Made by a program: the position numbers and the translations under genes. The notes below the pieces were generated by a model. The model was not told the DNA's origin, made no database searches, and saw only the letters and a program-made list of their open reading frames with translations. From the sequence record LR535910.1: a DNA stretch of 64,000 bases; one strand, 5' to 3'. This document shows positions 6,573 to 6,791 of the stretch, one piece after another; position 1 is the first letter of the stretch; each line of letters opens with the position of its first letter.

Positions 6573-6791
6573 ATGTTTCACCGTCCTGGGTTTTCAGCTT
6601 TAAACACCGATGTCTGTTGGGCTGAGTACGAGCGGGTGAAGGAGTTCTTACCCGTAAATCCTAAACACATCAACGTGGGTACTATCGGGCGTGTTGCGTT
6701 CGATGATACTCCGCTGAGTACGTGTATTAAAGCAGCGCTTGGTACGCTGCCTGAGCCTCACCACCACGACTGGGAGGCAACTTTACCCTAA
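6573..6791 (+). CDS. 72-aa protein containing a degenerate EF-Tu N-terminal/P-loop segment
   Basis: [34 protein letters not shown] aligns without gaps to EF-Tu [25 protein letters not shown]. Confidence 0.7.
   Translation: [72 protein letters not shown]

Follow-up and report, generated by a model that had tools for sequence, protein, structure and literature searches.

A 64,000-nucleotide (nt) stretch of sequence record LR535910.1, referred to here as the window, carries a short gene that an initial annotation, made from the sequence alone, had read as encoding a stand-alone mini-protein that mimics the N-terminus of elongation factor Tu (EF-Tu) with a disabled phosphate-binding loop (P-loop). 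Positions 5900-7500 of the window are 100% identical to the SPFM-series Salmonella jumbo phages and 98% identical to SPN3US (genus Seoulvirus). In SPN3US, the counterpart of the mini-gene is gp192 (SPN3US_0192, YP_009153486), which is annotated 'hypothetical protein' and shares 100% identity with residues 1-60 of the mini-protein; PHROG 28329 and 12626 both match the mini-protein as well (E 6.8e-46 and 3.4e-18, respectively). With full-length similarity and a retained position after a GNAT acetyltransferase gene, the mini-protein belongs to the family formed by gp192 and the Erwinia phage proteins annotated 'putative EF-Tu'. Sequence comparison identifies the mini-gene as a real, selected gene for an EF-Tu-derived pseudo-P-loop mini-protein. 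The gene and the parts of its predicted product are arranged as follows:

6559-6564, plus strand: Shine-Dalgarno sequence GAGGAG, 8 nt 5' of the mini-gene ATG and within the 3' arm of an outer RNA stem.
6573-6791, plus strand: the mini-gene, with its ATG at 6573-6575 and its TAA at 6789-6791; predicted product of 72 amino acids (aa) plus stop.
6573-6653, plus strand: N-terminal region, residues 1-27, family-specific and without an EF-Tu counterpart.
6666-6689, plus strand: beta1 mimic, residues 32-39 (HINVGTIG), equivalent to EF-Tu H11-G18; the most constrained part of the protein.
6687-6710, plus strand: dead P-loop, residues 39-46 (GRVAFDDT), against EF-Tu G18-T25 (GHVDHGKT).
6708-6752, plus strand: helix-A mimic and family motif ALGTLP, residues 46-60, equivalent to EF-Tu T25-Y39.
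6753-6788, plus strand: variable C-terminal tail, residues 61-72.

The initial annotation had credited the gene with its own GAGGAG ribosome-binding site (RBS), and this lies at the position listed above. An M-F/L-N/H start is kept in all relatives, favouring the ATG at 6573 over that at 6528; the longer open reading frame (ORF) from ATG 6528 was rejected as an artefact, as that ATG sits within a conserved RNA hairpin. In the family alignment, C15, E18, Y19, R21, V22, F25 and L26 of the N-terminal region are near-invariant, N34, V35 and G39 of the beta1 mimic are invariant, and C51, which stands where EF-Tu has Ala30, is near-invariant. The tail is swapped out in SPN3US by an inserted 172-aa gene, and the Erwinia phages have a ~45-residue tail instead.

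When residues 32-56 of the mini-protein were compared with E. coli EF-Tu H11-L35, taken from the fetched E. coli tuf gene, 12 of the 25 positions were identical without gaps, as the initial annotation had stated. The best ungapped BLOSUM62 segment between the two proteins scores 58, a value attained by none of 1,000 shuffles (mean 26.5, standard deviation 3.8, maximum 47). Database matches of the window protein alone were borderline: all 24 Protein Data Bank (PDB) matches at E<=10 were EF-Tu (E 0.1-1.6), the sole NCBIfam matches were four EF-Tu models (E 0.011-0.022), the score against the EF-Tu family model TIGR00485 was 14.5 bits and thus far below the curated cut-off of 522.4, and a Pfam search returned zero matches. 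Picked from a 64-kb scan, the window protein would not convince by itself, and it is the relatives that decide. A 22-sequence family profile matches EF-Tu residues 8-37 with E 5.7e-7 to 2e-5, has only EF-Tu among its best PDB matches, and ranks EF-Tu above eIF2-gamma and the remaining translational GTPases. The homologue P0012 matches EF-Tu models at E 5e-8 and other translational GTPases at 1.7e-4 or worse, and 10 of the 22 family members match Pfam GTP_EFTU (PF00009). Since these matches of the relatives are significant, the core is homologous to EF-Tu beta1/P-loop/helix A, and the alignments indicate that residues ~29-60 descend from the EF-Tu N-terminus, comprising its first strand (beta1), P-loop and first helix (A). 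The homology claimed by the initial annotation thus holds at the level of the family. The alignment of hidden Markov models (HMMs) to EF-Tu extends through the helix-A mimic stretch and stops at EF-Tu residue ~37-42, where the EF-Tu likeness ends. A further resemblance that had been noted, of an upstream YERVK to EF-Tu FERTK, was used by no HMM alignment and would need a gap of 7-11 residues; it is not confirmed here.

The Erwinia phage proteins (ChrisDB gp215, Huxley gp203, Machina) are true homologues of the window protein, with which they share synteny, N-terminal region, EF-Tu-like core and ALGTLP motif; they differ from it in being ~110 aa long, with an extra C-terminal segment, and in keeping the EF-Tu loop better (GHVDH-G/S-R-T/S against the decayed GRVAFDDT of the window). 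These Erwinia jumbo-phage homologues show EF-Tu identity at 14 of 15 core positions, with 12-14 consecutive EF-Tu residues. Neutral decay of the motif among relatives was looked for, and the motif was found not to be decaying, being better preserved in the Erwinia phages. The resemblance to EF-Tu is not a new sighting, as GenBank records of homologues already read 'putative elongation factor Tu', 'putative translation elongation factor' or 'putative GTPase' and have placed it on the public record.

The mini-protein is nonetheless a small pseudo-P-loop protein that cannot bind or hydrolyse GTP. The Walker Gly23-Lys24 of EF-Tu has become Asp-Asp, and the window reads GRVAFDDT where a G1 Walker A motif would read GxxxxGK[ST]. 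Lys24 is kept by none of the 22 members of the family alignment (A1), of which 14 have Arg and the others Asp, Ser, Gly or Gln; P0029, a further member outside this alignment, is the only one with Gly-Lys, but has Pro in the Ser/Thr place. G2 (switch I Thr), G3 (DxxG) and G4 (NKxD) are missing, and the 72 aa compare with ~200 residues in a full G domain. Beta1, the P-loop position and helix A (~8-37) of bacterial EF-Tu (tufA/tufB) align ungapped with the mini-protein, which has only ~30 of the 393 EF-Tu residues, their flanks being unrelated N- and C-terminal sequence. The beta-barrel domains II and III are also missing, and the neighbouring genes encode the GNAT and an uncharacterised 140-aa protein. 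A split GTPase shared with the next gene was considered and rejected: neither the 140-aa protein nor gp193, the product of the gene inserted in SPN3US, has a G-domain signal, and in SNU29 and ChrisDB, the two Erwinia phages that were compared, the gene 3' of the mini-gene is not homologous to gp193.

Selection was analysed on codon alignments of 13 loci, with the adjacent GNAT gene as control and with regional values calculated separately for the short forms of Seoulvirus and the long forms of the Erwinia phages. In LR535901, LR535903-08, LR535911-13 and LR535917 (SPFM1, 5-10, 12, 14, 15 and 20), BLAST breaks the locus into 26-27 aligned pieces and the mini-protein appears frameshifted or truncated (P0008-P0011), which looks like error-rich sequence and not like natural variants; these assemblies were left out of the selection analysis. 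For the whole gene, the ratio of nonsynonymous to synonymous substitution rates (dN/dS) was 0.09-0.25 in pairs with measurable dS, similar to the 0.04-0.20 of the GNAT gene. The ratio of the proportions of nonsynonymous and synonymous differences (pN/pS) varied along the protein:

N-terminus, residues 1-27: short forms 0.13, long forms 0.37.
Beta1, residues 32-39: short forms 0.05, long forms 0.00.
P-loop remnant, residues 40-47, the most variable part of the core: short forms 0.42, long forms 0.35.
Helix and ALGTLP, residues 48-60: short forms 0.08, long forms 0.20.
Tail, residues 61-70: short forms 0.64, long forms 0.73.

Synonymous sites were near saturation in every region (pS ~0.7). These ratios indicate that purifying selection guards the amino acids of the strand and the helix while the nucleotide-binding loop drifts, and they bear out the view of the initial annotation that this is a stand-alone protein whose GTP residues were lost and whose scaffold was kept. 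They also bear on whether the gene might instead be a functionless remnant of a tuf 5' end that was once captured, or might act at the nucleotide level as a mimic of tuf mRNA or DNA. Such an origin would sit well with the borderline matches of the window protein alone and with an Erwinia-phage copy that is 89-92% identical to E. coli tuf across 36 nt. The window core, however, is identical to E. coli tuf at just 44 of 75 nt (59%), and this, together with the saturation of synonymous sites, argues that selection acts on the protein and not on RNA or DNA likeness to tuf; a nucleotide-level tuf mimic was rejected on the same two grounds. In addition to the low dN/dS and the near absence of nonsynonymous change in beta1, the frame is open and the start and RBS are conserved across Seoulvirus, Machinavirus, Erskinevirus and other genera, which makes a relic or nucleotide element very improbable.

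We additionally searched phage genomes by tblastn with EF-Tu residues 1-45 and read nine phage copies. Short EF-Tu N-terminal copies were found in many unrelated phages, although some of the tblastn records contain real tuf genes as host contamination. EF-Tu N-terminal fragments are present in four or more phage protein architectures besides that of the window protein, in differing gene neighbourhoods:

Vibrio phages henriette (VPDG_00052) and 2.058.O: 59 aa.
Aaphi23 ORF27: 59 aa.
Vibrio phages 1.244.A, Va2 and 150E35-1: 133-239 aa, with the switch-I ERGIT stretch retained in Va2 and 150E35-1.
Burkholderia phage FLC9 gp386: Walker lysine lost.
Pseudomonas phage PaBG_294: fragment internal.
Serratia phage Muldoon gp023: fragment C-terminal.

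These proteins and the window protein have the EF-Tu core in common, and when the core was masked the other phage proteins split into separate families, none of them related to the window protein. The Walker lysine is lost in Va2 (GHVDHGRT) and 1.244.A (GHVDLGAS) as it is in FLC9, and the Lys24-to-Arg change of Va2 is the same as that in the Erwinia jumbo-phage proteins. Many of the fragment proteins have a strongly basic C-terminal tail, and like the window protein they are small, their genes lying among other small or early ones. Unlike in the window protein, the fragment lies mostly at the protein's own N-terminus and includes FERTK, and a GNAT is not annotated alongside. Because the same host piece recurs in different architectures and neighbourhoods, the recurrence argues that the EF-Tu fragment itself is useful to phages.

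The initial annotation had proposed a decoy or competitor for EF-Tu partners, naming EF-Ts, modifying enzymes and defence sensors. Read more broadly, the mini-protein would compete for any factor that binds native EF-Tu, including defence or toxin proteins for which EF-Tu is a substrate or cofactor. EF-Tu, the most abundant bacterial protein, is a known target in phage-host conflict: the e14 Lit protease, with the T4 Gol peptide, acts at Gly59-Ile60, the P1 Doc kinase acts at Thr382, T4 ModB ADP-ribosylates the protein, and contact-dependent-inhibition and type VI toxins bind it. A decoy would fit this battleground, the position of the gene in an accessory, counter-defence-like block (described below), and the recurrence of EF-Tu fragments, including the ERGIT stretch kept by Va2 and 150E35-1, which contains the Lit cleavage site. 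The pattern of constraint speaks against it. In the topology of the G domain, beta1 occupies the centre of the sheet, has both faces covered and is buried in native EF-Tu, and in the mini-protein family it is this buried strand that is constrained and the surface-exposed loop that is variable. The exposed EF-Tu residues 1-10 are not kept, the 30-residue piece is without the EF-Ts, aminoacyl-tRNA, Lit and Doc sites, and PADLOC and Pfam gave no link. Because the conserved beta1 is invisible to binders of native EF-Tu, we regard a plain decoy for such partners as quite unlikely. The Lit/Gol, Doc and ModB systems and the mini-protein have EF-Tu in common as the contested host protein, but none of these systems is known to use a phage-encoded copy of EF-Tu residues 11-35.

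Structure prediction by AlphaFold2 with the family alignment was of low confidence: the mean predicted local distance difference test score (pLDDT) was 60 in the short form and only 56 in the long one. Helices were predicted at residues 12-25 and 47-56, with a further one at 86-95 in the long form, and two of the predicted helices are amphipathic. In both forms, the beta1/P-loop stretch was unstructured with pLDDT <50, and this low confidence is weakly consistent with a strand in need of a partner sheet. A different reading of the same protein is that it is an exapted scaffold, a beta-loop-alpha unit capped by the N-terminal helix and maybe metal-stapled or dimeric, whose EF-Tu likeness is historical only. 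The 27 conserved N-terminal residues that have no EF-Tu counterpart, the two predicted amphipathic helices and the near-invariance of C15, E18, H32 and C51 across the family, with C51 in place of EF-Tu Ala30, would all be expected of such a scaffold. It would be hard to explain, however, why HVNVGTIG stays EF-Tu-identical in a new packing and why several unrelated phages keep the same fragment, and AlphaFold2 assembles no such fold. We consider a plain scaffold a serious but unlikely alternative.

Between the GNAT gene and the mini-gene lies a structured leader with the following elements:

6511-6569, plus strand: conserved leader, with an outer 11-base-pair stem that pairs 6511-6521 with 6559-6569 and encloses the entire Shine-Dalgarno sequence.
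6528-6537 paired with 6541-6550, plus strand: inner hairpin with a loop at 6538-6540, followed by a T-run at 6550-6554.

The minimum free energy of the leader is -32.2 kcal/mol (z -5.9), and none of 200 shuffles folds as well. Over 12 relatives, the ~70-nt spacer has 77% mean identity, exceeding that of the coding sequence, and the synonymous sites of the flanking genes are saturated. The pairing is kept in 92.8% of cells across these relatives, compared to 44-55% in slid controls, with compensatory changes at 6 pairs. The leader occurs once in the window and has no Rfam family, the sole match being to Ref64 below threshold (E 0.55). The GNAT stop codon is located 6-9 nt 5' of the outer stem, so translational coupling of the mini-gene to the GNAT gene is possible; alternatively, the leader may combine a terminator with regulated hiding of the RBS. 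The 3-nt loop of the inner hairpin lies within CACTATGAG, which is identical in most relatives (alignment A3), and little or no variation among all 12 relatives is seen in the unpaired TTTTACG after the inner hairpin and in GCTATTTATGTT at the start codon. Because this conservation exceeds what pairing explains, a recognition site for a protein or polymerase is possible in the leader and start region. A middle promoter had been suspected across the ATG, and this suspicion has to be dropped: a sigma-70 scan was blank at the mini-gene ATG, the local motif is unique in the window, and promoters of the T4 middle type have no bearing on SPN3US-like phages. A repeated promoter consensus was likewise rejected, as GCTATTTATG has a single occurrence in the window, and so does the motif that extends from the Shine-Dalgarno sequence as far as the ATG.

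The wider locus has a conserved gene order. At all 13 loci read, an SMC-like gene is followed by small ORFs, the GNAT gene and the mini-gene, and farther downstream by genes for a macrodomain protein and a transglycosylase. In the window, the genes around the mini-gene are:

2378-4888, plus strand: SMC/Rad50-like ATPase, 836 aa, which bounds the conserved block on the left in all relatives.
6014-6502, plus strand: GNAT acetyltransferase (SPN3US gp191), the invariant left neighbour, with an alternative GTG start at 5987.
6803-7225, plus strand: 140-aa gene, PHROG 11720, function unknown, whose AAGGAG RBS overlaps the mini-gene stop codon.
7226-7474, plus strand: 82-aa ORF without family annotation, with a 50-nt overlap with the macrodomain gene.
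7425-7925, plus strand: macrodomain protein, 166 aa, DarG-like (NCBIfam E 1e-30, PADLOC DarG E 4e-32).

By tblastn and protein searches, homologues of the mini-protein were confined to SPN3US-like phages of Salmonella, Escherichia and Proteus and to jumbo phages of Erwinia (Machinavirus, Erskinevirus and relatives). A profile search of 1.84 billion representative proteins returned ~7 clusters of the family, the remainder being true EF-Tu fragments or assembly artefacts. The idea that the fragment was captured alongside tRNA genes (thrT-tufB) was rejected, with zero tRNA genes in the window. Since the AAGGAG RBS of the 140-aa gene overlaps the mini-gene stop codon, the two genes are probably co-transcribed and co-translated, and the lineage of P0029, a distant metagenomic relative (L011), has kept the 140-aa protein with 46% identity. 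The DarG antitoxin macrodomain is a DNA ADP-ribosyl glycohydrolase, and as there is no DarT partner, the macrodomain protein probably helps the phage to counter DNA ADP-ribosylation of the DarT type. Its presence marks the block that holds the mini-gene as accessory and probably counter-defensive; PADLOC models gave no match for the mini-protein, P0012, the GNAT or the 140-aa protein.

The inserted gene differs in its distribution among these phages. SPN3US, SEGD1, Proteus phage 7 and others have the extra 172-aa gene gp193 (PHROG 14325, function unknown; L001, 3880-4398) directly after the mini-gene, where it replaces the last 12 residues of the mini-protein, and the SPFM/SPLA phages and the window (6752-6803) are without it. 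In P0004 (83 aa), from a 241-kb contig filed under Salmonella enterica, residues 1-57 are fused to the gp193 C-terminus, representing a third allele. By eye, gp193 contains the motifs GxxH ... GDSHL.

The gene upstream of the mini-gene matches Pfam Acetyltransf_1/7 (E 3e-4) and PHROG 3810 'acetyltransferase' (E 4e-42). A single-sequence PDB search with this GNAT gave no match, and its family profile matches generic GNAT structures only, N-alpha-acetyltransferases among them. It directly precedes the mini-gene in 13 of 13 loci, with a spacer of ~66-70 nt, and homologues of both genes are found in the same 62 phage records. This association raises the possibility that the mini-protein is a regulatory, targeting or pseudo-substrate subunit of the gp191 GNAT, made in step with it through the RBS-hiding leader, whose covarying stem begins just past the GNAT stop codon. 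The replacement of the Walker lysine, by Arg in the long forms and Asp in the window, would then produce a non-acetylatable EF-Tu look-alike, as befits an alignment in which Lys24 is kept by no member and is most often Arg. In the host, it is a GNAT, RimI, by which EF-Tu is acetylated (PMC9079301). The weak resemblance of the GNAT profile to N-alpha-acetyltransferases points the same way. Co-occurrence tells little, however, where a whole syntenic block shares its clade distribution, and the other phage EF-Tu fragments have no annotated adjoining GNAT. RimI targets the alpha-amine of EF-Tu Ser1, and that region is missing from the mini-protein, while P0029 keeps Gly-Lys and the length of the spacer may keep a terminating ribosome from opening the stem. 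On balance, we judge a role as partner of the GNAT to be a serious but unlikely alternative.

Our preferred reading, which we put forward tentatively, is that the mini-protein works by protein-protein mimicry of EF-Tu and folds only on a partner. Because the best-conserved strand is buried in native EF-Tu, the partner would most likely meet the beta1 element in a non-native state. One candidate is the rest of a G domain: inserted there as strand and helix, the mini-protein would either form a hybrid blind to GTP or prevent EF-Tu from being folded or repaired. The other is a host factor that deals with the EF-Tu N-terminus while it is nascent or unfolded. Such mimicry would serve to take over the host or to counter its defences; the DarG-like macrodomain is encoded in the same accessory block. 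Expression would be gated by the conserved RNA stem that hides the RBS, and ribosomes finishing the upstream GNAT gene may open this gate.

Several points weigh against a partner-folded mimic. The AlphaFold2 alignments were shallow (23-24 sequences), so that the failure to predict an autonomous fold is weak evidence, and C15, E18, H32 and C51 might together bind a metal and so hold a small fold together without a partner. The recurrence of EF-Tu fragments could stem from a shared route of tuf 5'-end capture and not from a shared function, and in Vibrio phage 2.058.O the strand itself is altered (NVGTTKH). Strand complementation would need nascent or cleaved EF-Tu, because the intramolecular beta1 has a large entropic advantage. 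Finally, a literature search covering SPN3US-type and Erwinia jumbo phages, phage EF-Tu mimics, truncated EF-Tu and EF-Tu in defence found no paper or experiment on the family.

A bolder proposal, which we hold to be rather improbable as it stands, is that fragments consisting of EF-Tu beta1, dead P-loop and helix A form a recurrent class of small phage proteins, independently recruited to act on EF-Tu from inside or, in the SPN3US clade, to serve as a non-acetylatable look-alike that steers or restrains the co-expressed GNAT. Action from inside would proceed by displacing the G domain's own first strand and helix, which would leave EF-Tu blind to GTP, or by intercepting nascent or cleaved EF-Tu.

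Taken together, the interest of the mini-gene rests mainly on its selection pattern and on the recurrence of the fragment across phages; if the plain scaffold were true, the finding would shrink to a curiosity of gene origin. The leader represents a conserved RBS-hiding RNA in a jumbo phage, a group with poorly known gene regulation. The mini-protein is also a naturally occurring case of a beta-(P-loop)-alpha unit in isolation. Laboratory minimal beta-(P-loop)-alpha polypeptides, which serve as models of ancestral P-loop proteins, need an intact glycine-rich loop for phosphate ligands; the mini-protein shares with such prototypes and with pseudo-enzymes an isolated beta1/P-loop/alpha1 unit outside a full NTPase domain, but unlike in the prototypes its loop is less conserved than the rest of the unit, and in the window protein this loop is acidic. 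To our knowledge, no phage-encoded partial copy of EF-Tu has a described role. The selection on a piece of the buried EF-Tu core, together with its recurrence, suggests that there may be a general way for phages to interfere with or exploit the folding, modification or surveillance of EF-Tu.

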